Of a stretch of 64,000 nucleotides of DNA, positions 3,016 to 33,903 are shown piece by piece. Position 1 is the stretch's first letter. Each line of letters begins with the position of its first letter. The stretch lies in the sequence record MH494197.1. The stretch is one strand, 5' to 3'. The position numbers and the translations under genes were made by a program. The notes under the pieces are model-generated. The model saw only the letters and a program-made list of their open reading frames with translations, searched no databases and was not told the origin of the DNA.

Positions 3016-3027
3016 AGTGATTCAGTT

Positions 3028-8700: not shown

Positions 8701-9816
8701 TCACATGTTACCCTAGGAGGATGAAGATCACCGCGGTACTGAATACTGTTAGAGGGAATCCACCAGCTTGGTGGTATAATCGTTTAGATTAAAATCAGTA
8801 CTGACACCATTCTGTTAATATCAGTACTGTTATTGATTTTCATATGAGGTTCAAAAAGATGTACCCACCACAGGAGGAACTATCTTTTCTGTACTGTCTC
8901 ACAGGAGGTAGAGTAAATGAATCGTTCGCAACTCATCTCTATGTAGAACATTATACAGTACTGAATCATAATGTCAATAGCTTTCTTTCATTATTCAGTA
9001 CTGATATTCTTGAGAACTACCCGACTACAAACATCATTATATCCCACAAATCATAAACGTCCCAACGTAAATTTCAACTTTCGAAGATCCAACTTTATTT
9101 CATAGGTACTCCAAAATTTTAGGATCGAGATTTAGGATGGAGTACTAACCAACTTTTGCTGAGCTCTGGATATTAAGGTGAAAGTAATAATTCAGTAATT
9201 AATCATTGGTGATTACTTTTGATTACATTTGATGTAATTTGCAAAATGGAAAAGGAGCTTGAAACTAGTACGGCAGACTTCCTCTGCCTACTAGGTGCTG
9301 GTTTCATCTATCGGAGGGAAATGGATTAACCTTAGCAATACGTAACTGAATACGTTCTTGATTAAACGTGCACATTCCTGTACTCTATTACACTCTAGTA
9401 CACTCTAGTACTCAATACTGATCACTACAATGATTATAAATGATTACTTAAATGTTTATATATGATTACTTATGACTACATATGATTAGGGTTTACTGGG
9501 AGAATCTAGTGATCGCATTTGTCCAGCTGAATTTTAACATATATAACATATGTTAAAGCCTGTCCAATGCTTCTGCGGAGCTTCTGTCTATATGTTGAAT
9601 TACTTCCTATATATAAGCATTAACATATAGTAGTACTGATTATGCTGTACATTCTCTTTAATATTATAAGGGTCTATAGCAATCTCGGTACATCTGTTAA
9701 ATGCATATCTATTAAATGCCAGTACTATTATAGATCTAATCCATGCTTGGTCAGTCGGTGGTAGTTTACTTATATAGTACTCTTTATAGTTTTTATGTTC
9801 TGCATAGTATACCTTA

Positions 9817-9996
9817 TTATTTCAAAGTACCATATAGTACTCTTAATAGGAAGTAGTACGTATTAGAGATATCATTACTAGTTAAAACAATCTTTGTACA
9901 CATATTAAATTCGTATTGAGTCATTGCTGGGATTAAATTGTTAACCCATGCTTGTTCGTTTTCTTTGAGTTTACTTATATAGAAGTCTTTATACAT
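9817..9996 (-). CDS. KEFY-family protein (MYKDFYISKLKENEQAW..., 59 aa)
   Basis: Hand-translated intact ORF, below the ORF-track length cutoff. Confidence 0.75.
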   Translation of the reverse strand: MYKDFYISKLKENEQAWVNNLIPAMTQYEFNMCTKIVLTSNDISNTYYFLLRVLYGTLK

Positions 9997-10228
9997 AGTA
10001 TTATCTCTATTAATATGATAGTACTAGTGTTAGTACTGAGCACAATTGTTCTTTATAGTTCTTAGGGTATATAGAATCTTTTATGCACTCATTGAAGTGC
10101 CATAGGTATAATCTTGGGTCGCATTCTTTATATATTTTACGCCATAGGTATATATCTTGGGTCGCATTCTTTATATATTTTTTACGGGGACGAATGTTAG
10201 TTTTCTTATATAGAAGTCTTTGTGTTCT

Positions 10229-10438
10229 TTATTCATATAGGAATAGTATACCTATGATGCCTGAGTACATGTTAGTACTGTTATTATTGGCGTTTGCGTT
10301 TAAAGTCATTTGAATACAATTGTTGTAGCATAATCTGCCGAAATATGTATCAGTACTTAAAGGTGCAGTAGTCCTTAGAAACATTTGTTCTGTGGGGCTG
10401 AGGTGTTTGGAGTAGAATTCTTTATGTTCATTATTCAT
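10229..10438 (-). CDS. KEFY-family protein
   Basis: MNNEHKEFYSKHL...YNNCIQ...YSGIIGILFLYE. Confidence 0.85.
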   Translation of the reverse strand: MNNEHKEFYSKHLSPTEQMFLRTTAPLSTDTYFGRLCYNNCIQMTLNANANNNSTNMYSGIIGILFLYE

Positions 10439-10634
10439 AGATATATAGGAGTGCCATTATGTTGGAGTATAGTTTATTGTTGTCATTTTCTTGCAGTGCT
10501 TGTATAGTACTACGTATACAGTTATTATAGCATATTTTTGTGAAATTATTTTGTAATTTCATTTTCATTGGTTTTGCTTTATAGAATGATTGTTTTGTGG
10601 GACTAAGATGATTTATGTAGAACTCTTTATACAT
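10431..10634 (-). CDS. KEFY-family protein
   Basis: MYKEFYINHL...YNNCIR...YSNIMALLYIYE. Confidence 0.85.
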   Translation of the reverse strand: MYKEFYINHLSPTKQSFYKAKPMKMKLQNNFTKICYNNCIRSTIQALQENDNNKLYSNIMALLYIYE

Positions 10635-10651
10635 GTTAGTACCTTAGTGCT

Positions 10652-10837
10652 TTAGTGTCTGTATATAAGTAATAGTAAGAATACGTACTGCACCTGTTCA
10701 TCTTTAGTATTGAGTACTGTACGTATTGCGTCATTAAACAAAAATATAGTACTTGGGTCATTAGAATTTAAGGGGTTTACGGGGACGGCGTGTTTGTAGT
10801 TCCCTTTAACAAATTGTATATAGTATTCTCTATGCAT
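10652..10837 (-). CDS. KEFY-family protein
   Basis: MHREYYIQF...FNDAIR...YVFLLLLIYRH. Confidence 0.8.
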   Translation of the reverse strand: MHREYYIQFVKGNYKHAVPVNPLNSNDPSTIFLFNDAIRTVLNTKDEQVQYVFLLLLIYRH

Positions 10838-10838
10838 A

Positions 10839-11027
10839 TCAGTACCTATATATTAGGGCGAGAATGTAGTACAGTTCATATGGAATGTAATTTGGGGTGA
10901 TAGCACACTGTGTATGGTAAATGAATTGTTGGGTATTTTTCTTATCCTTGATATCTATTGGGTTTAGTGGTATAAGCATTTGGGAGTTTAGTTCCAGATG
11001 GTTTAAGTAGAATTCTTTGTTATTCAT
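10839..11027 (-). CDS. KEFY-family protein
   Basis: MNNKEFYLNHL...YYILALIYRY. Confidence 0.8.
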   Translation of the reverse strand: MNNKEFYLNHLELNSQMLIPLNPIDIKDKKNTQQFIYHTQCAITPNYIPYELYYILALIYRY

Positions 11028-11226
11028 AGAAGAATATTAGTCCCATTACGCCTGAGTACTGAATATTTTTGTTATTGTTTTCTAAAGCTTCTAGAGTAAT
11101 ACGTATACAATTATTAAAGCAATCTCTGGCGTGTGGTGTATCTAAACGTAAAGGTGATACACTCCTTAGAAACATTTGTTCTGATGCACTGAGGTGTTTG
11201 GTGTAGAATTCTTTCTGTTCGTTCAT
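11020..11226 (-). CDS. KEFY-family protein (close paralog of 10229-10438)
   Basis: MNEQKEFYTKHLSASEQMFLR...FNNCIR...YSGVMGLIFFYE. Confidence 0.85.
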   Translation of the reverse strand: MNEQKEFYTKHLSASEQMFLRSVSPLRLDTPHARDCFNNCIRITLEALENNNKNIQYSGVMGLIFFYE

Positions 11227-11236
11227 ATTGGCCTCT

Positions 11237-11425
11237 TTAGTACACGAAAGCTAGGTACAGTGTATGATACAGTACTCGATGATAGCTATCAAAATCTAGT
11301 ATACATGCTTTAGTGCACATAGTAAAGTACACTTTATCGTTTTGAGCATTGATACCGCGAGGTTTATCTAATAGATTAGTACTGAGGTACATTGGGAAAT
11401 ATTTTGTGTAGTATTCTTTATGCAT
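11237..11425 (-). CDS. KEFY-family protein
   Basis: The family start MHKEYYTKYF lies at 11425, inside ORF 11237-11470. Confidence 0.75.
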   Translation of the reverse strand: MHKEYYTKYFPMYLSTNLLDKPRGINAQNDKVYFTMCTKACILDFDSYHRVLYHTLYLAFVY

Positions 11426-11807
11426 ATTAGTACCTGAATATAAGTAGGATAGTGTTATATAATTGGTCATAGCTACTACTATTTTCTATACTGCGTTCTA
11501 TGCAATTATTGAATCCCAGTACTGCCAAATCGTTATCCGGGGGACTTTATATCTGGCGTAGTGTTCAAATATACTGGGAGAAATTGTGTGTAGTATTCTT
11601 TGTGCATATTAGTACCTATATATTAGTAAAAGGATGTGATACAGTACTCGATTATAGTCTTCAATATATATCGAGGATTTAGTGCACTGAATGAAGTAGT
11701 CTTTTTCGTAGTTTTTTCTATACCCAATGGTTCTGTTGGTAGAAGGTGTTGGAGATACATTGGGAGTTTCTCTATGTAGTATTCTTTGTGGTTATTCATA
11801 TTATGTG

Positions 11808-11981
11808 TTATTTCGTGAAAACAAGGGTTAGTACTGCATAGTACAAGTCATACGTATCTTTAGGGTTAATAGCACCTTTAATACATTCTTTCATTACTTC
11901 ATTATAGATAATTTTAGTACTGAATGTATTGGATGTTACTATATCGGAATTAAGGTACGAGAGGTAGAATTCTTTATACAT
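11808..11981 (-). CDS. KEFY-family protein
   Basis: The family start MYKEFYLSYL lies at 11981, inside ORF 11808-12044. Confidence 0.75.
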   Translation of the reverse strand: MYKEFYLSYLNSDIVTSNTFSTKIIYNEVMKECIKGAINPKDTYDLYYAVLTLVFTK

Positions 11982-12080
11982 AGTTTGAAATATACGTAAT
12001 GAGGTGATGAAATTTCTTATCAGTACTGATAAGTTCCTGTACATGTTTTGTTAGTTTGTACGCGTTTTATAGAGTCCGGA

Positions 12081-12458
12081 TTATCGATTACAGTACTGTA
12101 CATGAATAGATCTTCTTCTGATAATTCTTTGCCGGTAATTCTTTGAGGAATTGCAGTACTGTATCAGTTTCGTTAGTACGTTGCTTTTGGAAGAAGTGCA
12201 TGTTATCGTGTATTTTTCTGAACCCATGCAGTACATATCTCCGATTTGGAATTGTGCAGTACTGATATCATGGGTGCTATTACAATTCCCGAAGAAGTAT
12301 ACATTCCCGAAAGATAGAATTATAGTGCACGGGATATTATCCATGTGTATATAGATAGATGCATTCTTTAGTGCTTTTGTGCTGGTATTAGTACTCAATA
12401 CTTTTAAATCAGTATTATAGATATTAATAAAAGCAAGAGCTATATTATTTTTCTTCAA
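12081..12458 (-). CDS. Hypothetical protein (125 aa) interrupting the KEFY array
   Basis: Long ORF on the operon strand with no family motif. Confidence 0.6.
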   Translation of the reverse strand: MKKNNIALAFINIYNTDLKVLSTNTSTKALKNASIYIHMDNIPCTIILSFGNVYFFGNCNSTHDISTAQFQIGDMYCMGSEKYTITCTSSKSNVLTKLIQYCNSSKNYRQRIIRRRSIHVQYCNR

Positions 12459-13207
12459 GTACGATTTGAGGTTCTTAGATACGAGAACATTTCTGGATTT
12501 TTCTTTTTATTTCGTTTCTTTAGTATATTCGGGTGATACGTATAAGATGATGTAACTGATTCTGCTTGAATACTGTTGAGGTATTTAAAGTGCTTAAGGT
12601 ATTGTTTGCTGTGTGCATTAAGTTTCATTTGGTTTCCTTTATACAGATGCGAGTGCGAGGATTTCCCTGAAGGGATTATCTTTTGTTAGTGCGTGATGAA
12701 TGCAGCTATTGAGATTAATATTTTTAGTACTGTTAGTTGCCGTTGTAGTACTTCACGAAGGTGTCGTACATGAAACGGTCTTTAATGCTTATGTGTTCTA
12801 TATAGTATTCTTGCATATTATTCCTTACATAGAGATGAGTTTCAGTACATCAATATACATATAACGTTCAGATGACTGTACACGGGTAGTGATAATCTCA
12901 ATCGATATATTTTAATTCCATGTGCAGATGATTGATGGTGCTGAATAAATGAGTTGTGCATACTTTGTTCTATGTGGTTTAGTTTATTGAAGTAGTACTC
13001 AAAAGTGTTCATGTCTACCTTAGATTGAGATTAGTTTAAGTACTTCTCTGTATGTGTACTTTTCGTTTTGTGCTTCTACTGTACATGATAGTAGGTATCG
13101 TTTTTTATCTCTTTTGTTCCCGACTGTGTAGTACCTTTGGAATTTATTATAGTTGTATCTATCTTTGTGCTGGAGTTTATAGATATAGAATTCTTGCATA
13201 GAGTACC

Positions 13208-13393
13208 TTAGATTGCTATCAGTTTCAGTACTTCAATATATGTGCGGTACTCTGCTTTAATTAAATTTGTACACACTGTAAGGGAATTTCTTTGTATAAG
13301 TTTATTGCCGCTTTTATACGCATTTCTCCACACATAGAGATGAGATCTTTCAGGCATAGATAGTTTATTTGTATAGTACTCAAATGTATTCAT
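13208..13393 (-). CDS. KEFY-related protein (MNTFEYY subtype)
   Basis: Paralog of MNTFEYYFNKL at ~12825-13012; both end ...Y(I)(D/E)VLKLI. Confidence 0.75.
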   Translation of the reverse strand: MNTFEYYTNKLSMPERSHLYVWRNAYKSGNKLIQRNSLTVCTNLIKAEYRTYIEVLKLIAI

Positions 13394-13995
13394 ATATTAC
13401 CTCAAATAGAGATTAGTTTAAGTACTTCTCTGTATGTGTACTTTTCGTTTTGTGCATCTCTTGTGCTTGTATATAGGTATCCTCGACGATATTTGTTGCT
13501 CCCGTTCTTGTAGTTGAATTCGAACTTATTGTAGATGAATCTATCGCCGCTGTAATTTACTTAAGTACAATTCAATGCTCATAGTATTCTCTTTACATAT
13601 CAATAAGTTTCAGTACTGCTCTGTACGTGTACTTAGTTGTTAGTGCTTCTTTATAGCAATACAGAAGTAATGTTGTTTGTCTCTTATACTACCGCGTTTG
13701 TAGTACCATACATTGGAGTTGTGGGTGTACTTGTCCCTGTCGGATAGATTTTGGTAATAGTATAATATATGATTCATGGTAATGTAATTAGCCTTATTAT
13801 GTTAAAGTACTCGGTCCCCGTACACCTTGTAGAATATTATCAACTACATTTTCTTGGTGCAGGATTAATACATTCGGTGCGGTTCTTTTAAGGTTTTTAA
13901 AGTACTGTATTCTTGTTTAAGGATGAACTGTACATCTTTAGGGAGAATATCTAAGTAGTACTGGTGTATGTTCATAGTTTTCATATAGTACTCTT

Positions 13996-14181
13996 TTAGA
14001 ACTTAAAGATGAGGTTCATGATAGATAAGTACTTAGTTTCAGGAAATTGATGTTCTATTGCATAACGTGTCTCCAGTCTGAAGTCAAATTTATAAAAGGG
14101 ACTATTCATATCCATAGGTTCATTGGGAAATGAATCTCTGTATTGTTTGTGCAGCTTACTACAGTAGAATTCTTTATACAT
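13996..14181 (-). CDS. KEFY-family protein
   Basis: MYKEFYCSKL...YLSIMNLIFKF. Confidence 0.8.
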   Translation of the reverse strand: MYKEFYCSKLHKQYRDSFPNEPMDMNSPFYKFDFRLETRYAIEHQFPETKYLSIMNLIFKF

Positions 14182-14182
14182 A

Positions 14183-14395
14183 TTAGTGCTCGATTAAAAG
14201 GGTTAGGATGTAATAGTATTGCATACTTTCTACCCCTTGTACAGCATTTCTTATTTTATTATTCCTGTACGAGTTCAAGAGTTTAGGACAATGTTTGAAG
14301 TTTATATAATTATTTTGTGTATACAGTAGGCTTTCTCGTAGACCTTTTGTTGGTAGTGCATCGATGTAGTACTGTTCAATGTTCATAGTGTTCAT
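14183..14395 (-). CDS. KEFY-related protein
   Basis: MNIEQYYIDAL...YYYILTLLIEH. Confidence 0.75.
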   Translation of the reverse strand: MNTMNIEQYYIDALPTKGLRESLLYTQNNYINFKHCPKLLNSYRNNKIRNAVQGVESMQYYYILTLLIEH

Positions 14396-14719
14396 AGAGC
14401 TACCAGTACTAAGATTTTTGATAATTGTTTGTTTCTATCCCGCAGATGTTGTTGTGTAAAATGCTCACTACAAGGGTATCAAGTGCATTGTTCAGCATAA
14501 GGTTACATCCAGTACTGTTATATTTTTTAGCTCAATTAGCCACGAACAATCCGCGAGAAATTTCCCGTACTCTAGTTCATTTAGCGTATTAATGTAGTAC
14601 TTAAGTGCATTTGTCATGTACAGTTCTCCTTATATTCCTTCTATAGTACATCAGTACTGAAAGGTTGTCAAGGGTTTTCTTTTTGGGGTAAATATGATAT
14701 AATGAATAAAGGAGGAAAT

Positions 14720-15866
14720 ATGTTACCTTTTGTAAGAATGGTTAAGTACGGGAATATTGCACCAGTACCGAAAAAATAAAGAAAGTTATAGCAGGATATG
14801 ATAATTTATATGTACTATATGGTGATGGTTCGCTATATGGTTGTGGAATCAATAACTATCAACAGTTAAATATTGATGGAACTGCTACACAAAATAATTG
14901 GGTACTAATTACCAATGGTGTTAGTAATGCATGGGCTGGTGGATACAATATTTTATATTTGAAAGAAGATAAATTTATAATGCACGGAACTAATGTCTCA
15001 TTAGGTTTAGGAAATACTACAATTCCATTAGGTGGAGTAGATGTAACTTCTTCATTCCCAGATATCTCTAATATTAAAATGATATCCATTGGTTTTGATT
15101 CAATGCACTATGTTAGTGCTGATGGTACAACTGTATATGGAAGAGGTATGAACACAAATGGTTCTGTTGGTTCAGGTAGTACTTACTCACAGAGTACTTT
15201 CACTTCAGTACTGAATAATGGAACTAATCAGGTTATTGATATATTTGGTAACGTTAATAATACAGTGCTTCTAACATCGAATGGTGAGCTTCGAGCATGT
15301 GGGACAAGTGCTTATGGTTCTATAGGAAATGAAACTGGTAAGTGGACATCGTTTGGTTTAAAATTATCTGGCACTAAAATAATGGGTGGTAATGGGTATA
15401 GTACGCTTGCATATACAAATTCGGGAATGTACCACTCAGGGTGGCAGTTAAATGGGGAACTAGGAAATGGTTTAGATACTAACGTACAGGTATATCCATT
15501 TCAATTTAACTCTAAAACGATAGATAGCAAGATAGATAAAATTGCCAAATCATCATCTGGGTCATATGTTAACATGTACTCAACAACAGAAGGAAAGATA
15601 TATACGACAGGTTCGTTTGGTAAAACGGGTCAACTACTGCATTGAATTTGTTCACCAATACATTAACACTTATAAATTACAATCCAGATACCGCCTCGTT
15701 GTATACGTGCACAAACTTCAGTGTTGTGTATGATGGTAATGAAACTATTGCTGTAAGTGGTAGTCCTACATATGTACCGAGGGCGTTGCCGCTAATAGAT
15801 GGACTACAATTCCATTACCCAAGTAATACTATGCCAGTACTTGATGCTGGCTTTTCTTTTGATTAA
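14720..15866 (+). CDS. Leader-tagged RCC1/BLIP-II-like beta-propeller protein #1 (frameshifted)
   Basis: Hybrid leader MLPFVRMVKYGN; the body is closely similar to #13; LYGCGxN..QL and GWQLNGELGNG repeats. Confidence 0.8.
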
Positions 15867-15893
15867 ATATAGTATAATGAATAAGGAGGAATT

Positions 15894-17017
15894 ATGTTAC
15901 CTTTTGTTAGAATGTTTGATTATGGGAATATAATCGAAGTTAATAATATAAAGAAAAGTGTTGTTAGTTACACTCTTGAAATGTTTCTAATGCAAGATGG
16001 CACTGTATATGCACACGGTGAAGATTCAAACTATAATGCGGGTTTAAGTACACAGTTTGTATCGTTAGGAGCAGTTCAACAAATCACAACTGAAGTTGAT
16101 GACTTATGGTTAGGATCGTTTTCCGTTGTTATTAAAGGTGATAAAATATATGGTTCAGGTTCAACATATGCATTCACGAATTCTAATACTTTCCAACAAG
16201 GATATACTGACTGGGCTGTGTATTTCACTGGTATAGATGTTACCCAAATTAAAAAATGTTATGTGGTTATACAGCATTTATATTAATGAAAGACGGAACA
16301 CTTTATGGAAGAGGATGGAATCGAAGTGGTACATTAGGTTTAGGACATAAAAATTATGTTTCAGCGTGGACTGTACTTGACACTAATGTGGATAATATAT
16401 TTGGCGGTTACCTTGGCGATACATTGTTTAAGATTAAAAACGATGGAACTGTATATGGTTCAGGTTCAAATAACAGCTTTCAAGTTAAAGCAACATCGGG
16501 TGATGCAACCACATTTGTTCCGTTGTTTGATGATATATCTTATGATATAAAATGCAGTTTTGTTTCTGGTGTTGGTTTTGTAATGATAACATCTGATAAT
16601 AAAATATATGCAACTGGAACTACTTTTGCTGGTAGTGGTGCACATAGTAAAGTTTTTGATGTTGGTTTTACTATAGGTGATATGAGTAATATATATCATC
16701 CTGATTCGTTGGACTATTCGACTAGTGTTGTATTTTTAATTAATGCAGATACAAACAAACTAATAGCAACTGGGCATACCCATTTACGGAAGTAGTTCAA
16801 GTTCCTTCCATATTTTACAGCATTTCAAGAATTCAATTTTACATCGTTCAATTCGAATACACGATATAGTGGGTCTTTATACTGGAATACATTTTACGAA
16901 GGTAATAATGTATGGATGAATGGATATAATCCTGAAAATACGGGTGGAAAGAATTTCTCATTGTGTTCAATACCGTTAGATACTATTATTACTAAGCAAA
17001 TTGATTTACCTTTTTGA
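15894..17017 (+). CDS. Leader-tagged RCC1-like protein #2 (frameshifted)
   Basis: MLPFVRMFDYGN; LYGRGWNRSGTLGLG repeat. Confidence 0.8.
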
Positions 17018-17087
17018 ATACTATGCCAGTACTCAAGTACTGGCTTTTATTTTATTAAATATAGTATAATGAATAAAGGAGGGAAAT

Positions 17088-18273
17088 ATGTTACCTTTTG
17101 CAAGAATGGTTAAGTACGGGAATAAACAGCCTATTCCTGAACCAGTTGAGTTCACTGATGTTTTACAGCAACATTATACTAATGCTATGTATCTACATAA
17201 GCCCACGAATACACTATACGGTTATGGTGGTAATAACTTGAGCCAATTAGGTCTAGGGAATCAATCGACAGTTTCTACTTTTACAGTACTGGCAACGCAC
17301 TGTGCAGCCTTTTGGTTAGGCGTTCATGGCTCATTGATGATTGACTTGGATAATAGAATATATTTCACAGGGAATACAGTAGCATTCCCCGATTATGGAG
17401 ATGCAACTCCAGTTAATGGTTATTTTAGAACATGGACTGATGTTACTGCCGCATTTGACAAAATAAATGTACACGCTAATTTAATCAAGAGTGTACATAT
17501 AGGTGAAAGTACTAGAATATTACTACACGATGGAAGAGTAGTTGTTTGTGGTAAAATGCAAATGCCGAATGTGGAACAGGTAACCAAAATCCCATACCAG
17601 TACTAACAGTTGTTACTGGTATGGGTGAAGTTCTCAATTGGCGTGTTCATTACAGGGTACGCACTATCTCAAAACAAATAAAGAAGCATGGTTTTGTGGT
17701 AAGGATAACTTTGGTGAAAGTGGTGCTGGGACTAGCTCATACGTTTTACTAATAAGTTAATACGATCCAACGTCGATTATATAAGTGCTACTTATGATGT
17801 TACGGTGGTTCACTGCCGGTAGGGTGTACTGGAGTGGTAGAAACAATTCTGGACAAGCTGGGAATGGTACTACTTCAACCACAAACCAATTAACTACAGT
17901 TCAGAATTCACAGGTTATAGTGAATATTAGTGATGGTTTCCTGTGTCCTAGTAATATGGGTAACTCAACAATTGGTGCACCTATGGCTCAATACCCATCA
18001 TATGTCAGAGTGCAGGCATCAATACATATGGTCAAGAAGGGACGGAAATACAACAGTAATTACTTCGTGGGGGCGTTTTCTTTAAGTGCGATACAGGGTG
18101 GATATGACAATGTTCTTATGGCATCCAAAGACTGGTCCAGAACAATAATTATAACTAAAGATTATAAATTATATGCATGTGGGGGCTTTAACGGTTCAGG
18201 TGGTAACTTACCGGATGGTACTTCCGTAATTAAAACATTAACATTAATGCCAACGCAGTTATGGCAATCATAG
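17088..18273 (+). CDS. Leader-tagged RCC1-like protein #3 (frameshifted)
   Basis: MLPFARMVKYGN; LYGYGGNNLSQLGLG and YWSGRNNSGQAGNG repeats. Confidence 0.8.
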
Positions 18274-18282
18274 GAGAAAATC

Positions 18283-19404
18283 ATGTTACCTTTTGTTAGA
18301 ATGTTTGATTATGGAAATGAAGCACCTGATCCTAGTTCGGGATTTCGAATAATAAGTACAGGAGACGCATTACTATTAATTACTAAGAGTGGTGATTTGT
18401 GGGTGCGTGGTTATAACCGTTATGGCAAGTTAGGTATAGGTAATAACACCACTACCTATGTACTTGATTGGACGAAGGTTAGAAGTGATGTAAAGTTTGC
18501 GTGTGGTAGTGGATTGGTAACAGTTATCTTTACTAAGGGTAATCGCATATTGTACTGTGGTGACAAATGGTTTGAAACGGGTGGTGTTGGTAGTGCACAG
18601 ATTTTCACATGGACAGATGTTACGCACCAATTTGGGGCAGTAGATTTGAGTACAGTAAGGGATATGAAAATGTCTTATTACACGATTGGATTATTGACTA
18701 CTAATAATCAATTATACGCTAAGGGATATGATAATAACCTATCATTTGGTGGGGTTAGTAATAAGGCGACTGCTGTGTTTATTGCGAATAATGTACAAGA
18801 GTTGTATACGAGTTTAGTTAGTACAATCTACGTTGATACAAGTGGTATATTACATCGTTGTGGCATGAGTGATAACGGTTCGTTGGGTAATAATGTTAAT
18901 TTAACTTCGTATCTAAGTTATTCACAGACTGGTATGACGATTAAGGACATTGGAATGATGACTACGAACACTGGGTTATTATATACTGATTCTAGTGCAC
19001 GCACGAGATATTTTATTGCTGGACAGAACTTGAATAAACAGATGGGTAATGCGGCGGCTGCGAGTGCCATTACGAGTACTTACACAGAGCTTTCTGGTAG
19101 TGTTGATAAGTTTTCTTCTTTATGGGCGAATGATGGGATATTGATGACATTTGCTGTGGGTAAGAACACTAATCAGTTATTTTATGCTGGGATGAATACT
19201 TTTCATGCGAGTGGTGGTGTATCTTCATATGCGGATACATATGAGTTAGTCCCGATGGTGTTTAATGACATACAGGAAGTGTTATGTGCACAGCGTTTAT
19301 CGGTGGTACATGATTCTACGAAGTGGTATTACTGTGGTGATGCTAATTCAATGTATGGTTTACCGGACGTAAGTACTTTTACTGAGTTACCGTTGCCCTT
19401 TTAA
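18283..19404 (+). CDS. Leader-tagged RCC1-like protein #4 (intact, 373 aa)
   Basis: MLPFVRMFDYGN; LWVRGYNRYGKLGIG and LHRCGMSDNGSLG repeats. Confidence 0.9.
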   Translation: MLPFVRMFDYGNEAPDPSSGFRIISTGDALLLITKSGDLWVRGYNRYGKLGIGNNTTTYVLDWTKVRSDVKFACGSGLVTVIFTKGNRILYCGDKWFETGGVGSAQIFTWTDVTHQFGAVDLSTVRDMKMSYYTIGLLTTNNQLYAKGYDNNLSFGGVSNKATAVFIANNVQELYTSLVSTIYVDTSGILHRCGMSDNGSLGNNVNLTSYLSYSQTGMTIKDIGMMTTNTGLLYTDSSARTRYFIAGQNLNKQMGNAAAASAITSTYTELSGSVDKFSSLWANDGILMTFAVGKNTNQLFYAGMNTFHASGGVSSYADTYELVPMVFNDIQEVLCAQRLSVVHDSTKWYYCGDANSMYGLPDVSTFTELPLPF

Positions 19405-19476
19405 TAATAGGTCAGTACTGAAATATGTACTGGTATTTTTGTAAATACTATATAATTTAATTACGGAGATTTTATT

Positions 19477-20653
19477 ATGTTACCTTTTGTTAGAATGTTT
19501 GATTATGGGAACGTCGTTGAGCGACCTGTGGGTACACGTTATACCTGTAGTGACTATAGTGCGACTTATAGTTTAATAAAGGATGGTGTGTTATATGTAT
19601 CTGGGATGAATAACTATTATCAGTTAGGTAATAACACTAACGTAACACGTTACAACGAGTGGTTAAAAGTTCCAGAGACTGATAGTGTTAAGTTTTGTAG
19701 TACTGGTTATAGTCAGACAATGTATATTACTAACAATGGGAGGATAATGATAGCTGGTGAAGATCCTACTTCCAGTGCGACGGCGGTAAGTGTTAAGGTA
19801 TGGACTGATATAACTTCTAGATTTAGTGCAGTTGATACAAAGAAGATTGTTTATATTTCAATAGAACGCTTTGGTGTAATGATGATCATGCAAGATGGTT
19901 CAGTATGGGCGTGTGGAGTTGATAATACTGGTTGGAGTGGGCAGGAAGTAAAACTGTTGGTTTCTTTACTTTCAGACAAATATACACCGGAAGTGCAGGA
20001 AGTGCAGTTGCTGGTACTGCTGGTACTGGTACTGCGAGAATTCTGTTAGCTAATGGAACAATCTTGTCCGCTGGTACTAATACATATCATCAATGTAATG
20101 CTAGTACTGATCCGGCTGTTCTAACATTCACTGAATCATTCCACGGGTTGATCCTTCATTGATATATCAAATCAAGATGTGTAATAACAACTGTATTATA
20201 TTTTGAGTGATAAGAGATATTACGGTACTGGCTGGGAAGTTTTGGTGCATTGGGTGATGGTGATATTACGGGTTCGAATAATAAATTCTATGCAGGTACA
20301 TTGTCAGTTGCTCCTAAAACATGCGTGCTTATATGTCGTATCTATGTAGTTCTTCTGGGGATTCTAGTATGTACATAGGCGATGATAATTTCATATACAC
20401 CTGCGGTTATCGTGGGAGGAACTTAATAAATGCCACTACAGATATTGGTACGTTCACGAAATGCATTCAAAGTGCACAAGGATACAAGAATGGACTTATA
20501 TATAGTGGGAATTATTGTGCTGTAGTTTTTGATCCAGATTTGGGTTCAGGAATGTCATATGCGGTTTCATCACCAAAATTGAATGCACCAGCACCACAGG
20601 CGAGTGTTCCAACATTGGGTATGAGTTCGTTACAAGCTATTATTTTACCATAA
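19477..20653 (+). CDS. Leader-tagged RCC1-like protein #5 (frameshifted)
   Basis: MLPFVRMFDYGN; LYVSGMNNYYQLG repeat. Confidence 0.8.
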
Positions 20654-20726
20654 CATTATACCAGTACTGAAATATGTGCTGGTATTTTTTTAAATACATT
20701 ATAATTATTATATGGAGATTTTAGTT

Positions 20727-21851
20727 ATGTTACCTTTTGTAAGAATGTTTGATTATGGGAATACAGTGGCTGCTCCCACTGGTATAAAGGATTTCAAGCA
20801 AATGGAAGCCACTGTATGGCACTAACATATAGTGGTGAGATGTGGGCTTATGGTACAAGTACAAGTGGATCAATGGGAACCGGATTCACGGTGGGTGCTG
20901 CTGATAAGGGTTGGTACAAGTCTAACATTAGTAATGTTAAATCATTCAGTTCTAATATGCAGACTAGCACAGTGGCTTTGACAAATGATGATAGAGTGCT
21001 AGTTTGTGGCTCAACTAGATTTGACAAATTCAGTACTCCAGATATTGCATCATCTAACCTTGATTGGTTGGATGTTACTGATCATATTCCACAGGAAGTT
21101 ATTGATGCTGGGATGAAGCAAGTTATTAACCACGTATATTATGTTGCCATTTTACTGAAAACAATCTATTATATAGTGTGGCATTATCTTTGGGTAATAC
21201 TAGTACTATAATAGATAGAACATGGAGAAGAAATACATTTGGTGATATACAAGTTGAACGTGTTGTTTCGTTGACACAAACCCCAAGTGGTCCTTTGTGT
21301 ATAGTTCAAGATGCAGACGGATACCAGTATGGTATTGGATATAATGGTAATAAGATTATTGATAATACTTCCACTAATTCATATTCTGTATATACCAAAA
21401 TGGGTACACTTCCTTACAATGAATTTGCCATATCGAATAGCGGGAAATTCAGTTCAGCGGTATTATCAGATGGGAGAAGTGTTTATAGTGGTACATTTCC
21501 AAAGTCATTCAATAATAGTTTTGGTTCATTTTGAAAGTTGGTGCGGTATCAGATACTGTGTTTGGTTTAGATGCAAAAATATGCGTGGTCAATATGGTCA
21601 AAATCAATTACCAATTGCGTCGGCTGATAACAATGCAAGTAATGGCGTTGTGAACCTTCGTAATGTTCCAGCGGGAACACAAACGAAAGACATTCGATTT
21701 ATATGCGGAAATGATGTAAAGAACGTTTATATCATATACACAAATGAAGACGGCATTAGCTCATTTTATGGATTGGGACCAAACTTTGATCAAAATTCCT
21801 CAACATATGCACAATTCGTCAAAGTGGATTTGCGGGGCATTATCAAATTAA
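20727..21851 (+). CDS. Leader-tagged RCC1-like protein #6 (frameshifted)
   Basis: atgttaccttttgtaagaatgtttgattatgggaat at 20727; MWAYGTSTSGSMGTG repeat. Confidence 0.75.
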
Positions 21852-21861
21852 GGAGAGAAAT

Positions 21862-22960
21862 ATGTTACCTTTTGTTAGATTGTTTGATTATGGGAATATC
21901 ACACGGTCCTAAAAATATAATTAAAGTTGGTGCTTCTACACAGGGTCAATTCTTATTGACAGATTCACATGATTTATATTACATAGGTAGAAATCAAGGT
22001 GGTGAATCTGGAAATGGAAATACCAACACAGTATCCTCATGGATATTAGTAAGTACAGATGTTTCTAATTTTTTCGTGGGTGATCGTACACTTGTTATTA
22101 TTAAAAATGATAATACGATATGGTCATCAGGTCAAACGTACTGGTTCACATCTTCCACAACTACTTCTTACAGTACTGTATTAGTTGATAGAACCAGTTG
22201 GTTTACCAATGCCATACCAGTAAGTGAAATTGCTGATATAGTATGTTCGTATGGTTTAATATTTGTACTTAGCACTAGTTCAGTACTCTATGGTGCAGGG
22301 CTAATGGATATCGTGGTGCTTTAGGTATTGGTTCATCATCAATTTACACATTAACTCAATGTGCTACTAATGTGCGTAAAGTAATGACGAATGCAAATGA
22401 CAGTATGTATATTACATTAGATAATAAGTTATATAGTTCTGGGTGGAATGACCGTGGATTACATGGCACAGGAACAGAACACAAGTTAACATTTGGGGAC
22501 TGCGTAGTTCTGGTGTAATAGATGCAGCTATTGGTGGACATACACTCAATTACTATAATGGTACATCATATTTCACATGTGGTACAACTCCAAACTTTCT
22601 TAGTTCAGATTCAACTACATTCAAAGCAGTTCCTGTAAGTACTTTACCTAATAATTCACCTTTGTTTATGACAAATTCAGAGGCAACAAGCACGGCTACG
22701 CAAATTATATTAACTAGTGCATATCAGAAAGGTATTGGAAACCGTGGTTTGGGATTAAACAATTCTCAAACGGTGCTATCTATAGTGCTGCTAATTTACA
22801 ATTACCTGTAGAAGTTAGTGAGATTAGTGATGTTGCTTTTAGTGACGGATTAACATCATTATTAACCAAAGACGGAATGTATATAGTACTGGATCGTATT
22901 ACGCCATTCCGTGCAAGTGCAGATGTTGCAGTCTTTACTAAAATTGATTTACCAAAATAA
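21862..22960 (+). CDS. Leader-tagged RCC1-like protein #7 (frameshifted)
   Basis: Leader MLPFVRLFDYGN at 21862; LYYIGRNQGGESGNG repeat. Confidence 0.75.
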
Positions 22961-23028
22961 CATAATGCCAGTACTTGATACTGGCTTTTCTTTGGTTAAA
23001 TATAGTATAATGAATAAAGGAGGGAATT

Positions 23029-24198
23029 ATGTTACCTTTTGCAAGAATGGTTAAGTACGGGAATATTGCACCTGTTCGCCCTGAAATAAAGAAATTGGAT
23101 GGTAGTCAATTACATGTCGGATTACTATATAGTACTGGTAATATGTATATGCGTGGTTCTGGTTCGAACTACAAGTTAGGTACAGGTGATGCTAGTGATG
23201 TATTAGATGGTTGGGTACATGTACCCTATGAAGTTGATGATTTTTGGGCGTGTGTGTCCGGTACATTAATAAAGACTAAAGACAATAAGTTATATTGTGC
23301 AGGACTATACATGGGTGGATATTTTGGTGCTAGTGGTTCATATGTTAACTGGACTGAAGTAACTTCATTATTTGTGGGTATTAACGTCTCACAAATAAAG
23401 AATATAGAATTTACATCAGCGAGTACTTCCGGTAGTACACTAATATTGATGTTAGATGGTAGTTTATATGGGTTCGGTATGAACAGTAGGTCGGAGTTAG
23501 GTGTTAATAACAAAGTCGTATCTCCTATTCTTATAGATACTGGGGTAAGTTCAATAGGAGCACATAAATTAGGTGGTTCATCGTTCCATTATATAAAAGA
23601 CGGTAAGTACTACAGATGTGGGACCGCGATTGGTAGTAATATAGGAAGTTCTTCTTTAACTACATTTACTGAATTGAGTATTGCTGATAATGTTATATCT
23701 ATGCAAATATTATTTGACAACGTACAGTTATTATGTTTTGGTAGTACTGGATATAGTATCTATATGGCTGGTTCTAATGATTATGGTGGAAGAGGTGTTG
23801 GTGGTAGTACTGTTTACACTACATTCAGGAAAATAGATCTTACTGGATTTGGTGTTGTTCCCAGTGAAATACTATTTGAAAATGCAGGGAATGGTTATGT
23901 TAATATATCAACTGATAGTACTGGCATATATACATGTGGTGGTGGTGCTGGTGTTAATGGTTTAGGTAGACCGAGTAATGTTATATCAAGTTCACAGTTG
24001 GGTTTGATTGAGTTCAGTACAGGATTATACCCAGCAAATATAAGTCGTGTATTTTCACAGAGTTCATCTTCTGTTATATATTGTATAGTTAATAATGAAT
24101 TGTACTGGGCTGGGAGTAATTCATATTTTACTGATCAAACTACAAATACTGGTACACAATTTTCATTTATTAAGATGAAGGATATGCCTTCTGCTTAG
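23029..24198 (+). CDS. Leader-tagged RCC1-like protein #8 (intact, 389 aa)
   Basis: MLPFARMVKYGN; MYMRGSGSNYKLGTG and LYGFGMNSRSELG repeats. Confidence 0.9.
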   Translation: MLPFARMVKYGNIAPVRPEIKKLDGSQLHVGLLYSTGNMYMRGSGSNYKLGTGDASDVLDGWVHVPYEVDDFWACVSGTLIKTKDNKLYCAGLYMGGYFGASGSYVNWTEVTSLFVGINVSQIKNIEFTSASTSGSTLILMLDGSLYGFGMNSRSELGVNNKVVSPILIDTGVSSIGAHKLGGSSFHYIKDGKYYRCGTAIGSNIGSSSLTTFTELSIADNVISMQILFDNVQLLCFGSTGYSIYMAGSNDYGGRGVGGSTVYTTFRKIDLTGFGVVPSEILFENAGNGYVNISTDSTGIYTCGGGAGVNGLGRPSNVISSSQLGLIEFSTGLYPANISRVFSQSSSSVIYCIVNNELYWAGSNSYFTDQTTNTGTQFSFIKMKDMPSA

Positions 24199-24265
24199 AT
24201 TTTATGCCAGTACTCTGTACTGGCATTTCTTTATTAAATATAGTATAATGAATAAAGGAGGAAAT

Positions 24266-25420
24266 ATGTTACCTTTTGTAAGAATGTTTGATTATGGGAA
24301 TGAAGCACCTGTGCCAGTTGGTATAAAGATGGTAAAAGTTTTACAGAATAATGTGTTTATTTTATTAGAAGACGGAAGATTATATGGCAGAGGGCATAAT
24401 TTTTACTATCAATTAGGTACTGGTAGTAGTTCTCCTACTATAGTTGAAGAGTGGGTTTTATGTTTAACTGATGTAAAGGAATTTTGGACTACTGGTGATA
24501 CACAAGGAATATTAGTACGTAAAAATGATGGCACATGGTGGAGTACTGGTACTCAAATCTATCGTGGTGTTAATACTACTTATCGTGTATGGACAGAAAT
24601 ACTTGGTATTTTTAATGATGTGAATGACACATATAGTAAAATAGTTATAGGAAGCGGCGTTACATTATTATTAACAATAGATAATAAATTATATAAGATG
24701 GGTGACAATAACAACGGTGAAGTTTTACTGGGGCTGTTGGTCAAAGAGTATCAGTACTGACATTGACACCAGAAGTTAATGTTAAAGATATTGGTGTAAC
24801 CGCGAATAATGCTTCATTTGTATTATACAATGATGGAACATTAAAGTACAGTGGGAATAAATCTAGTATTGGTTCGACTGGTACGACTAGTACAACTCCC
24901 ACATTGACTACTGTTACTACTGGAGTATTACAGATAAATTCGGAAAATGCATATAGTGCTAATTACGTATTAAAGAGTGATGGGCTATATGTATTCGGTT
25001 CACAAATAGATGGACAGTTGGGTGATGGCACTGATGGCACTATTAACAGTCTTAGAACAATCACAAAGATACCAGCTTCTAGTATTCCTAGTACTGCTAT
25101 TGATTACATAGGTGGTTCTAATTTTGAAGCACACGTTAGAGCAGGTGGTATATGGTATTTCGCTGGGCGTGGAAACGCTTCTGGAGATGGAATAACGAAC
25201 TCTAATGTTATTAAAACATGGCGTGCATGTACTAATATAACTGAACCAGTTCCATATGATAAAATGACACATGGTTATATGATAACATTCATGTTAAAAA
25301 CGGTGAATTATATGGTTCAGGGAATGGTGGTAGAACTGCTGGTATGGGTACAATTCCGTATGAAGAAGAAAATGCCGGAAATACAGGATTATTTAAAAAA
25401 TAGTTACACCGAGTTAAAAT
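24266..25420 (+). CDS. Leader-tagged RCC1-like protein #9 (frameshifted)
   Basis: MLPFVRMFDYGN; LYGRGHNFYYQLGTG and LYVFGSQIDGQLGDG repeats. Confidence 0.8.
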
Positions 25421-25488
25421 TAAAAGCCAGTACTCTGTACTGGCATTTCTTTGTATTAAATATAGTATAATGAATAAAGGAGGGAATT

Positions 25489-26626
25489 ATGTTACCTTTT
25501 GCAAGAATGGTTAAGTACGGGAATATTGCACCAGTTCCGGTAGTTCCTACAATAAAAGATTTTAAGATTGGATTTTCACATGAAGTGTTATTGGACAGTG
25601 CAGGTGATGTATGGGGTATTGGATACAATACAGATGGGCAGTTGGCTTTTTGGATGCAAACACCAATTCATTAGGTGCGTGGTCTAAGATATATACTGAT
25701 GTTCGATTAATTGGAGTTACTGCTAGATATACAGTGGTAGTTACTAATAATAATAGAATACTATACGCAGGAAATAACTTAATTTCTAGTACTACCACTC
25801 TTGGGTGGACCGATATAACTACCAGTATGGGTCCGGTTGCGGTGGATAGCATCGATGCATTATATTGTACAGAGGGTATGATGCATATTAAAACTTCAGA
25901 TGGTTCTTTATATGCATATGGTCGTAACATGAACGCAAACAGTGGTGTTACTGGTGGTGTTATTAGTGTTGCAACTAAGGTTAATTTGCCTTCTGCTGTA
26001 AATGACATGCGATATACGTTTAGTTATGGTTCAGTACTATGTAGATTGGATACGACTTCTATATACGCATGGGGACGAAACATAAATGGTGAATTAGGTC
26101 AGGGTAATGCAACAGCCATTGTTACTCCAAAACTATTGTCTGGTTCTTCTATTGCAATGGGTACTTCGTATAATGCTACTGCAATTGTTTCTGGTTCTGC
26201 ATTGTTGCTTACATGTGGTGGACAAAACAGTGGGCAGTTAGGTAATGGTATTACAACTGATGGTAATGTATACACCTTTGGTGTCAGGACATACCAGCGA
26301 TCTTAATACAATAAGAAGTCCAGTGGATTGCAGTACAACGTACACCTCTGCATTTATGAGTCCAGATGGTATATATTACACTGGTGCTAACCGAAGTATG
26401 TTTGGTGGTATTAGTGGTGGTGCTACCGTTGGAATATATACTAAATGTAGTGATTTACCAATAACATATTCTAATATAATTCAGTGGAGTAGTGGTACTA
26501 TTGGTGGTGCTATATGTAGTAGTACAGAGTTATACCAATGTGGTATAGGTAGATACATTGCTGGTGATGGTGCGAGCACAACCGTATGGATTTAGGAAGA
26601 CACCATTACCTTGGGATACTTATTGA
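25489..26626 (+). CDS. Leader-tagged RCC1-like protein #10 (frameshifted)
   Basis: MLPFARMVKYGN; IYAWGRNINGELGQG and TCGGQNSGQLGNG repeats. Confidence 0.8.
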
Positions 26627-26695
26627 CATTACGCCAGTACTTGATACTGGCTTTTCTTTTGATTAAATATAGTATAATGAATAAAGGAGGGAATT

Positions 26696-27884
26696 ATGTT
26701 ACCTTTTGTTAGAATGTTTGATTATGGGAATATCACACCTGAACCTCTTCAAATTAAGAAAATAATACCAACTGATACTGAGGTTGTTGTACTTTATACC
26801 GACGGTCAACTATACGCACGAGGCAGTAATAGTTATGGGAAGTTTGGTAGAGGAAATAATAATGCAGTAAGGTCGTGGACATTAATTAGAGAAAATGTCA
26901 AAGATTGCTGGATGACACAAGGAACTTTGTTAGTTCAAGATAAGGACTTAAATTATTTTTATTGTGGATATGGTAGTCATATTGGTTTAGAAACTAGTAC
27001 TACATCATTTTTAAGTTATAACCAATATATTGAAAATTTGTACACACAAAGTTCAGGTACTTCAATTAAACAGATGTATGCAGGTACTACTTGGTTTACT
27101 TTCTTAATGGATAATAATACAATATGGAGTACTGGTTGGAGTGGGGCTAGACAATTCGCTGATGGTACTGGTAGTACTCAACAAATAACAGATGGATCAT
27201 TTGTAAAAGCTGTCACGCCTAATGTTGATATTGCACGAATACAGTCAACAAATAGCTGTGTAATGTTTTATGATACACAAAATAATTTATATATTGGTGG
27301 TAGTACATCAGGTATAAGTACTACTGATACATGGACTCCATACAATCAATATACTTTATATCAGCCAAGTACAACATATACAAAAACATTACAATATGTT
27401 GTATGTACAATTGGTGCAGTCAGTGCTTTAGTGGAGAATCCAAGTACAGGAGCACGTCAGTTCCTAGTGGGTGGGAACGCCAATAATGGGGCATGGGGTA
27501 ATAACACTACGTCTAGTACAGCACGAGCAGTATTAGGAAATAATAGTACAACCTTACCACCGTACTTTGTATTCAATTCATACTGGATACCCAGCACAAT
27601 CTAGTATACTAGTTACGAGTTCTGGTGTATATGCAACAGGTTTAAATGCGAGTAGTTATGCTGGTTCATTGGGTGTTGGTTCTAATGTTACCATTGGTAA
27701 ATTTACTGCATGTCCATTGCCGTCAGAAATAACATATTCTATGTATGATAAAATAAAAATATATCGAGGGTCGTTACGTACTTTCCTAACTGCTGATATG
27801 AAAAATATATATTCAACCGGAACTTATGATGATGGTGGTCCTAGTACAAATAGATATGTACTGGATACACCTAGACAATTGTAA
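26696..27884 (+). CDS. Leader-tagged RCC1-like protein #11 (one frameshift)
   Basis: MLPFVRMFDYGN; LYARGSNSYGKFGRG repeat. Confidence 0.85.
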
Positions 27885-27948
27885 AAAAGCCAGTATCAAG
27901 TACTGGCTTTTCTTTGTTAAATATAGTATAATGAATAAAGGAGGAATT

Positions 27949-28683
27949 ATGTTACCTTTTGCTAGAATGGTTAAGTACGGGAATAAAATTGAATATAAGC
28001 CACATGGTGAACAATTAATCACGACAATAGGAACAACACAATTTACAGTTCCTGCTGGCGTTACCGAAATATCAGTATGTGTTATTTCGCCGGTGGTCAA
28101 CGTGGTGCTGGCGGCGGCTTATCGTGGCGTAATAATATTCCGGTTTCTGGTGGTGAGTACTTAAGTGTTTCTCTTACATCCCAACACTACTACAGCAGTT
28201 GAAAACGGTTTATATCGTGGAACTGAAAAACTATGTGTTAGCTTCACTGGTGCATATACGGTTGGTGGACTAGGTGGAAAAGCTGCTAACGCTATTAATG
28301 ATGGTGGTGGTAATGGTGGCAACACTGGTTTAAGTGGTGGTGCAGTCATTGGTGGTGGTGCTGGTGGCTACACTGGTAAAGGTGGTAACGGAAATGCAAT
28401 CACTGGTGAAAATGGTGCTGGGGGCGGCGGTGGTGGTGGTGCATTCTATAATACCTCGTTCATTGGTACGGGTGGTGGTACTGGTATCATTGTTCAAGGT
28501 GCTAATGGTATTGGTGGTAGCTACGATGGTTCATATAATGGTGGTGCTGGTAGTGGTGGTGCTGGTAATAGGTATGGTGGTGGTGGTAGTATATGGGATA
28601 ATTCTTCTTATACGGCGGCTGGTGGTGGTGCTGTGCGAATAATATGGGGACGTGGGAGATATTATCCTAATAATTCAGTCTAA
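27949..28683 (+). CDS. Leader-tagged glycine-rich protein #12 (not a propeller)
   Basis: MLPFARMVKYGN, then FTVPAGVTEISVCVI and GGxG-rich repeats ending GGGAVRIIWG, typical of Gly-rich domains on phage fibre/structural proteins. Confidence 0.8.
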
Positions 28684-28752
28684 AATATAGGCCAGTACTT
28701 GATACTGGCTTTTCTTTGAATTAAATATAGTATAATGAATAAAGGAGGAAAT

Positions 28753-29866: not shown

Positions 29867-29936
29867 AACTATGCCAGTACTTGATGCTGGCATTTCTTTT
29901 GTATTAAATATAGTATAATGAATAAAGGAGGAAAAT

Positions 29937-31070: not shown

Positions 31071-31138
31071 TACTATGCCAGTACTTGATACTGGCTTTTC
31101 TTTGGTTAAATATAGTATAAAGAATAAAGGAGGGAATT

Positions 31139-32308: not shown

Positions 32309-32317
32309 GAGGAAAAT

Positions 32318-33449: not shown

Positions 33450-33479
33450 TATAATGCCAGTACTATGTACTGGCTTTCT

Positions 33480-33857
33480 TTACATATTATATAATGTGAA
33501 TGCTGTCACTTTACCAGTTGTTGTTAGTTCATTATAAAGATACTCCAATATTCTCGCACACTCTAAGTATATCTCGATATCATCATGAATAAGTGAGTAC
33601 TGAAATAGCTGTTCTTCAGATAATTTGTATTGACTTCCTTTTAATGAATTGAGAATATCTTTCACATCATCAAGTACTGGGTAAAGTACGAAATCTTCAT
33701 CATATTTTGAAGCAATAAATTCAAATCCACCACCATCAGTACTAGATATACCAATCAGTACTTTATCAACCAAGTTAATGTTTATATAACGGTTGTGATT
33801 TGGGTGAATTGAAATCTCAAACATACGAGTACTGTTACAATCAACATCAATATACAA
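33480..33857 (-). CDS. Hypothetical protein (125 aa, EEQLFQYSL motif)
   Basis: Intact ORF inserted in opposite orientation within the array. Confidence 0.75.
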   Translation of the reverse strand: MYIDVDCNSTRMFEISIHPNHNRYININLVDKVLIGISSTDGGGFEFIASKYDEDFVLYPVLDDVKDILNSLKGSQYKLSEEQLFQYSLIHDDIEIYLECARILEYLYNELTTTGKVTAFTLYNM

Positions 33858-33903
33858 ATATACATCGTTGAATTTATAAGTTAAGCAACCGTACTCAAGA
33901 AAA

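Follow-up and report, generated by a model that had tools for sequence, protein, structure and literature searches.

A single operon of paralogous small proteins with a predicted four-helix fold adjoins the RCC1-like propeller array of Asteriusvirus jumbo phages

The stretch of DNA that was analysed, called the window below, comprises 64,000 nucleotides (nt) of record MH494197.1, Escherichia phage CMSTMSU, a 386-kb jumbo phage of the genus Asteriusvirus (window position 1 is record position 124001). It is 100% identical to CMSTMSU and 88-98% identical to about 40 other jumbo phages of E. coli, Salmonella and Enterobacter, the 121Q/PBECO4 group. The minus strand contains, between positions 9600 and 14617, 22 slots for small genes, 21 of which hold supported members of one protein family, and an unrelated gene of about 219 amino acids (aa) lies in their midst (Table 1). 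The same organization is found in WPEC5, a relative with a clean sequence, which has 20 consecutive minus-strand genes of 57-75 aa and one gene of 219 aa amid them. The region constitutes a single polycistronic operon for small proteins of a lineage-specific family, for which a four-helix fold is predicted. It lies back to back with an array of RCC1-like propeller genes.

Table 1. Coordinates of the small-gene operon, its control region and the adjoining propeller array in the window
Feature	Position	Strand	Description
Slot 22, first gene after the promoter	14392..14617	-	75 aa in relatives; here at least one frameshift and one stop; family membership unsupported
Slot 21	14183..14395	-	Intact, 70 aa, divergent subtype
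Slot 20	13996..14181	-	Intact, 61 aa; phrog_11711, E value 2e-15
Slot 19	13774..13984	-	Subtype of slot 21; at least two frameshifts
Slot 18	13593..13777	-	At least one frameshift
Slot 17	13402..13585	-	Broken; 82% of the ortholog readable in one frame, at least one break
Slot 16	13208..13393	-	Intact, 61 aa, basic subgroup
Slot 15	13020..13199	-	Intact, 59 aa, basic subgroup
Slot 14	12825..13012	-	At least one frameshift
Slot 13	12639..12818	-	At least one frameshift
Middle gene (phrog_29152)	11977..12628	-	About 219 aa in relatives; here three pieces over two frames, one stop
Slot 12	11808..11981	-	Intact, 57 aa
Slot 11	11609..11799	-	At least one frameshift; a 58-aa reading frame stays open, C-terminal part out of frame
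Slot 10	11427..11607	-	At least two frameshifts
Slot 9	11237..11425	-	Intact, 62 aa
Slot 8	11020..11226	-	Intact, 68 aa; member used for the AlphaFold model
Slot 7	10839..11027	-	Intact, 62 aa
Slot 6	10652..10837	-	Intact, 61 aa
Slot 5	10431..10634	-	Intact, 67 aa; nearest protein in five compared relatives 41% identical, no close ortholog
Slot 4	10229..10438	-	Intact, 69 aa
Slot 3	10010..10251	-	Absent from WPEC5, nearest relative in 121Q; at least one frameshift and one stop, short internal tandem duplication
Slot 2	9817..9996	-	Intact, 59 aa
Slot 1, last gene of the operon	9600..9821	-	Frame open, 100% identical to the ortholog over 94% of its length; no ATG/GTG/TTG at the ortholog start
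Sigma-70-type operon promoter	14643..14671	-	TTGACA, 17-nt spacer with CAGTACTG, TACTAT; then AAGGAG and the first ATG
Divergent intergenic region shared by the operon and the first RCC1-like gene	14618..14719	.	102 nt, invariant in eight genomes
Extended -10-like element facing the RCC1-like array	14695..14703	+	TGnTATAAT; then AGGAGG and ATG at 14720; invariant in the alignment
Array of RCC1-like seven-bladed propeller genes	14720..35265	+	About 17 gene slots, mostly in pieces here: three full-length hits, 39 segments

The initial annotation of this DNA had proposed a tandem array of about 20 paralogous micro-proteins, and profile comparisons bear this out. A profile of the 20 WPEC5 orthologs matched, among the 1918 six-frame open segments of the window, exclusively minus-strand segments between 9603 and 14629, with E values down to 2e-21, while all other segments had E values above 0.2. 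An iterated profile search over about 270 kb of related loci converged, and its matches were confined to the arrays save for one, which is a probable extra member beside the propeller array of JNE01. Leave-one-out profiles from the 12 intact paralogs of the window itself guard against circularity via the orthologs. Eleven of these paralogs scored 14-67 bits (z scores of 7-37), compared to at most 13 bits for 200 composition-preserving shuffles, and thus the mutual similarity exceeds that expected from composition, and it is strand-specific. The twelfth, slot 21 of the 70-aa subtype, was joined to the family by profile-profile comparison (probability of 95%, E value of 4e-8). For the promoter-proximal gene, hhalign comparison of five orthologs with the family gave a probability of 0.5% and an E value of 0.12, and the iterated profile missed it. 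Slot 22 appears as a gene of matching size and place that is not demonstrably related to the family. All 20 member positions of the initial list coincide with gene slots, but two slots had been overlooked (about 13593-13777 and 13774-13984), and the member listed at 14395, i.e. slot 22, is not significantly similar to the family.

All 20 gene junctions of WPEC5 measure -8 to +11 nt, and those between intact neighbours in the window are alike. Because the genes are so tightly packed there is no space for internal promoters, and no terminator-like sites were found inside the array of the window. In WPEC5, Shine-Dalgarno (SD)-like motifs lie within, or straddle, the last codons and the stop codon of the respective upstream gene. 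Translational coupling, which had been proposed for the array, is consistent with the tight packing and the SD placement, but the coupling itself is deduced from these two features. The operon is preceded by a single promoter of the sigma-70 type. The -35 hexamer, the spacer core and the SD sequence do not vary among eight genomes with protein differences of up to about 50-65%. The strand of the 102-nt region that faces the propellers contains TGATATAAT, AGGAGG and the ATG of the first RCC1-like gene. The proposal of divergent transcription from a short region shared with the propeller array is thus well founded, as the region is invariant in the eight genomes and has promoter-like elements in both directions.

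Promoter-like sites of this kind are enriched in the window. The pattern TTGACA-N16-18-TAnnAT occurs 12 times compared to 1.8 expected occurrences, and 11 of the sites precede small-gene regions on the minus strand. Examples, at 3617, 6242, 8950, 37819, 43356, 54169 and 58107, are located in the regions of small genes on either side of the propeller array. Most of the sites have the spacer element AGTACTG in common, and AGTACTGTATAAT alone is present eight times, with 0 expected. These AGTACTG-type sites evidently represent the phage's own predicted class of host-type promoter. The related phage CBB has a region of short hypothetical proteins in which RpoD-like promoters are clustered, and the authors took this region to contain early host-takeover genes (PMC5259590). 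A host-type consensus promoter, as expected for an early host-takeover cluster, is also present directly upstream of the small-gene operon. The T4-late-promoter-like motif TATAAATA, a kind that has been proposed for late genes of CBB, occurs twice in the window compared to 13 expected occurrences, and it is absent from both arrays. This strong depletion suggests that the whole 64 kb is not a late region.

Database searches placed the family near one entry only. The PHROG family phrog_11711, which has no known function, was matched over its full 62 positions by 35 of 51 family sequences, with E values down to 2e-27 (six of the ten proteins tested first had E values of 2e-9 to 6e-19). This entry comes without annotation, array context or structure. 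It covers a part of the family, and the basic subgroup described below and the 70-aa subtype fall outside and are linked to the other members by the iterated profile or by hhalign. No match was found in Pfam-A (best score of 13.6 bits versus a cut-off of 27), the E values in a profile search against PDB sequences were at least 0.5, and PADLOC gave no match at threshold, with one member at an E value of 0.006. No family had been recognised initially, and apart from the unannotated PHROG this still holds. An exhaustive HMMER search of 1.84 billion cluster representatives retrieved 23 proteins, all but one of which have 59-69 aa. A match of 1225 aa was rejected as spurious, because it is a DUF6273/LRR protein. 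The sources of the matches that were looked up are Asteriusvirus phages or metagenome contigs, and a word-indexed search of 5.8 billion proteins gave 40 matches in the same phage group. Paralogs of the family were present in every Asteriusvirus genome examined, and a metagenome contig that carries the family has a locus layout identical in kind. The family is confined to Asteriusvirus-like phages.

The structure of the protein of slot 8 was modelled with AlphaFold2 from a 51-sequence alignment, and a confident model was obtained (predicted local distance difference test score (pLDDT) of 92.7, predicted template modelling score of 0.77). It has four helices, which comprise residues 3-9, 14-22, 31-49 and 53-65, so that the C-terminal helix is 13 residues long. 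A Foldseek search with this model against the PDB revealed no helix-turn-helix, immunity-protein-like or other known small helical fold (best E value of 5.3, template modelling score of at most 0.53), and a search against BFVD returned the family's own members only. The members are orphan small soluble proteins with a predicted four-helix fold, for which the sequence and structure searches found no relatives. In an alignment of 67 sequences from four genomes, the share of the commonest residue is 0.27-1.0 in columns 1-11 and up to 0.96 in columns 53-63, and in the middle columns it is mostly 0.12-0.36, with a few at 0.5-0.6. The conserved ends around a variable middle, which had been noted from the sequence, are therefore seen in the column conservation. 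One Tyr column is invariant, and Leu columns reach 96% and 84%. The well-kept columns are mostly aromatic or aliphatic and, judging from this residue chemistry, would form the buried core; the remaining columns differ between paralogs. A membrane-spanning segment, as in holin- or spanin-like proteins, was not found, and the longest uncharged hydrophobic run has at most 12 residues. The isoelectric points (pI) range from 5.5 to 9.6, in disagreement with a DNA-mimic anti-restriction function of the Ocr/ArdA type, for which strongly acidic proteins would be expected. The median net charge is +1, and about 15% of the residues are aromatic. The members of a strongly basic subgroup, which are encoded between the promoter and the middle gene, have pI values of 9.4-9.6 and net charges of +5 to +6.

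The paralogs are old. Within a genome their identity is 10-57%, with a mean of about 24%, and they form blocks on either side of the middle gene. The decay of similarity with distance along the array is weak (rho of -0.07 to -0.30), and therefore there is no sign of recent local duplication. Orthologs can be recognised across the genus, down to identities of 50-80%. In six genome pairs the pooled ratio of nonsynonymous to synonymous substitution rates (dN/dS) of orthologs is 0.34-0.49, and it is below 1 in the N-terminal, middle and C-terminal thirds alike, with values of 0.13-0.60 for the middle. Ongoing diversifying selection in the middle segment, for which a test had been suggested initially, is not supported by these values, which never exceed 1, nor by the age and conservation of each paralog. 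Because all segments have a dN/dS below 1 and orthologs are recognisable genus-wide, the variable middle is an old difference between paralogs and not ongoing diversification, and substitution rates indicate that each paralog is individually maintained by purifying selection.

In the CMSTMSU record 12 of the 22 small slots are intact open reading frames (ORFs), nine are broken, and one is open but has no canonical start. The nine broken slots together have at least 11 frameshifts and two in-frame stops, and one also has a short internal tandem duplication. The relatives contain more complete sets, with intact small ORFs in 20 of 20 slots in WPEC5, 16 in 121Q, 15-16 in JNE01 and 21-23 in a metagenome relative. 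The copy number of the family spans from about 15 (JNE01, SD-15_S21 and TH47) to 22-23 (CMSTMSU and a metagenome contig); the two members that CMSTMSU has more than WPEC5 are accounted for by slots 5 and 3. The density of indels between the window and close relatives, counted with standard gap penalties in blocks of at least 95% identity, was 3.7-6.2 per kb in the small array, the propeller array and beyond, compared to 0.9 per kb in the control, two clean relatives. An earlier count with lax gap penalties was discarded because the control was equally noisy. The events are mostly single-base, and about a third to a half of them lie within homopolymer runs. Because the excess of indels is found everywhere, the record has been flagged by NCBI as UNVERIFIED_ORG, and long ORFs are scarce (32 of at least 120 aa across the window), the breaks are most probably errors of the deposited sequence and unlikely to be biological, which means that the CMSTMSU record is not trustworthy at the single-base level. 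A true decay of the array in CMSTMSU, with real pseudogenes, would also explain why ten of the 22 small slots lack an intact ORF and why the same is true of the middle gene and most propeller genes. However, it is very improbable, not only for the reasons just given, with the indel excess seen inside as well as outside the arrays, but also because the pieces of broken genes are mostly 95-100% identical to intact orthologs. A further view, that the small ORFs are chance or untranslated frames in AT-rich DNA, could draw on the low number of annotated genes in several records (eight coding sequences in the array of CMSTMSU, and six of about 17 small genes in PBECO4) and on the lack of proteomic detection. 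It is already contradicted by the data and can hardly be upheld: the frames are open in every clean genome, the dN/dS is well below 1, the similarity is specific to strand and frame, the structural model is confident, and SD-like motifs are present at the gene junctions. Several deposited annotations miss most genes of the family, and it is under-called in public records.

The propeller array has a different architecture. In WPEC5 (673-17009 of its locus) most RCC1-like genes are separate cassettes with a GC-rich hairpin and a T-run, a -10-like element and an SD sequence, and their first three codons are identical. The -10 element and SD sequence upstream of the first RCC1-like gene in the window form this same module. 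A few RCC1-like copies in WPEC5 are joined by 9-15 nt instead. The copy numbers of the two arrays rise together across clades, with Spearman coefficients of 0.82-0.87 over nine genomes. However, all three genomes that have large arrays come from a single clade, and rho is 0.55 (p of 0.26) for the other six, which contain 6.7-11.2 gene-equivalents of propellers and 14.2-15.8 small genes. The ratio of small genes to propellers varies from 1.3 to 2.2, and neither a fixed stoichiometry nor co-duplication, as expected for a system of partners, was found. The suggestion of one-to-one cognate pairs is not supported, because in addition to the variable ratio the duplication units are independent and the promoter types and architectures differ. 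The neighbourhood of the two arrays is truly conserved, and a looser functional link between them is conceivable. In JNE01 (21460-21669) and Turkey5 (8073-8282) the far end of the propeller array is occupied by a gene of 69 aa, which matches the C-terminal half of the family (hhalign probability of 82%, E value of 1e-5) and has no counterpart in the window. The virion proteome of phage phAPEC6 comprises 62 proteins, including one of 4.7 kDa, and contains no member of the small family, while eight of 11 RCC1-like proteins were detected in the purified virions (PMC7247149).

We assign a probability of roughly 0.5 to the reading that the small proteins are a panel of early intracellular binding proteins that are aimed at host or phage targets. 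The operon would be read early in infection by the host RNA polymerase, from its single conserved promoter, and translation would pass from gene to gene, because the junctions are so short. The products would act in the infected cell as small binding modules, with one scaffold and many surfaces, each adapted to another target in the host or the phage, for host takeover or counter-defence, and they would not be parts of the virion. Several points weigh against this reading. The searched literature contains no transcriptome or infected-cell proteome for any Asteriusvirus. The early timing is presumed from the type and shape of the promoter. The Pfam, PDB, BFVD and PADLOC searches revealed no similarity to known anti-defence or host-takeover proteins, and positive selection, which might be expected for a library in an arms race, was not seen among orthologs. 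Small proteins are easily missed by mass spectrometry of virions. Furthermore, a link to the propellers would explain the back-to-back position no less well, and the same is true of the additional far-end member in JNE01 and Turkey5.

The main rival to this host-directed reading is a partnership, in which the small proteins would serve the virion-associated propellers as chaperones of assembly or packaging or as adaptors, or would inhibit them so that they stay inactive in the producing cell, and both arrays would form one two-component diversified system. We regard this as possible but rather unlikely. It is favoured by the back-to-back layout and the invariant 102-nt region, which are present in all genomes examined, including the most divergent ones, JNE01 and Turkey5, and two metagenome contigs, by the finding of the family solely in a phage group with an expanded propeller array, by the parallel rise of the copy numbers and by the probable further family member at the opposite end of the propellers in JNE01 and Turkey5. 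The presence of propellers and absence of small proteins in the phAPEC6 virion is also the pattern expected for chaperones (PMC7247149). In contrast, the ratio is not fixed, the correlation stems from one clade, the promoter types differ, and the arrays were duplicated independently, as self-contained cassettes with their own hairpin and -10 element on one side and as one operon on the other. In addition, phage GAP32 has one RCC1-like virion protein (PMC5259590), and no GAP32 member of the small family was among the search returns. A more specific version, with a propeller library packed in the virion and a small helical library that guides, loads or silences the propellers from the divergent promoter, so that both are halves of one system, is no more than a tentative proposal; if true, it would be a two-component diversified protein arsenal that has not been described for any virus. 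Lastly, the members might be small nucleic-acid-binding regulators or nucleoid-associated proteins, e.g., a set of specific transcription factors. The strongly basic subgroup and the small helical domains would be in agreement with this, and a lineage-specific expansion of a small putative DNA-binding domain is a precedent from a jumbo phage (PMC7824862). But most members are near neutral or acidic (pI of 5.5-9.1), Foldseek did not reveal a helix-turn-helix or any other DNA-binding fold (all PDB matches had E values above 5), and no match was found in Pfam, which makes a nucleic-acid-binding function quite improbable.

Parallels to the operon are known, and each differs in important aspects. 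Bacillus phage G contains a lineage-specific expansion of roughly 35 zinc-ribbon copies (Iyer et al., 2021, PMC7824862), which likewise shows one small domain greatly multiplied in a giant phage genome, with a function guessed from context. However, the small family is all-helical, has no metal-binding pattern, is organised in one operon with near-zero spacing, and is an orphan in sequence and structure searches. The early regions of Rak2-like phages (CBB_390-546; Buttimer et al., 2017, PMC5259590) also have very small genes behind host-type consensus promoters, which are presumed to act early on the host, but those genes are mostly unrelated, in contrast to the about 20 consecutive paralogs of one scaffold described here, for which early timing is presumed from the promoter type. 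Segmental amplification of tifA in T4 (PMC9391042) and SegB-driven amplification (PMC13096335), both of counter-defence genes, exemplify that accessory genes of phages gain copies by tandem repetition. Those repeats are recent and near-identical and arise under laboratory selection, whereas the copies of the small family are ancient, individually conserved and stable in the genus. The host-takeover module of SPO1 is a further example of an early cluster of small genes. Another comparison is the neighbouring array of RCC1-like (WD40_RLD/RCC1) propellers, which is also an expanded and diversified family at one locus with a common divergent control region and a broadly parallel copy number, but which differs in fold, size and cassette architecture and, unlike the small family, was detected in virions.

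The papers on Sharanji, fEgEco12, phAPEC6 and CBB and the jumbo-phage overviews do not mention the family, and it is undescribed in the literature searched. This kind of family is not novel, since giant phages are known to contain lineage-specific expansions of small accessory proteins. Unannotated small genes abound in giant phages, and here about 20 consecutive ones turn out to be one ancient family, each member of which has been kept by selection. Its confidently predicted fold matches nothing known, and it adjoins an equally unexplained propeller array. With one scaffold, roughly 20 surfaces, one promoter and about 36-41 deposited genomes, it offers a defined and tractable set of genes for studies on the role of such libraries.

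The stretch at about 12000-12640, which had been left empty in the initial list of members, is the unrelated middle gene. It is present in one copy per genome, always inside the array. It is similar neither to the small family nor to a gene of 216 aa at the propeller array's far end. A PDB profile search with it was empty, an IMG/VR scan gave 121Q itself only, and its AlphaFold model was unusable (pLDDT of 37). Past the propeller array, at about 35300-38000 on the minus strand (WPEC5 18930-21369), lies a run of about seven back-to-back genes of 105-125 aa, which is also found in 121Q (genes 224-232), JNE01, Turkey5 and SD-15_S21 and which is probably a second paralogous array.

Directly downstream of the small-gene array, at about 7730-9600, about 2 kb contain few ORFs, and short tandem repeats of 10-22 nt are present at 9382-9488. 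The counterparts in 121Q, JNE01, WPEC5 and metagenome contigs are likewise unannotated or contain tiny doubtful ORFs. Within this stretch the minus strand of 8788-8977 has a promoter that matches the consensus perfectly, TTGACA-16-TATAAT, and contains the AGTACTG element in its spacer. About 120 nt past it lies a 14-bp hairpin that ends in a T-rich run, with no ORF between them. Rfam, searched with the whole window, returned no match. The promoter and the hairpin are unchanged in eight genomes, while the interior varies, with compensatory changes in four predicted pairs. This element is a candidate small RNA, and the one or two CCUCC motifs in its interior might base-pair with ribosome-binding sites of the sequence AGGAGG.

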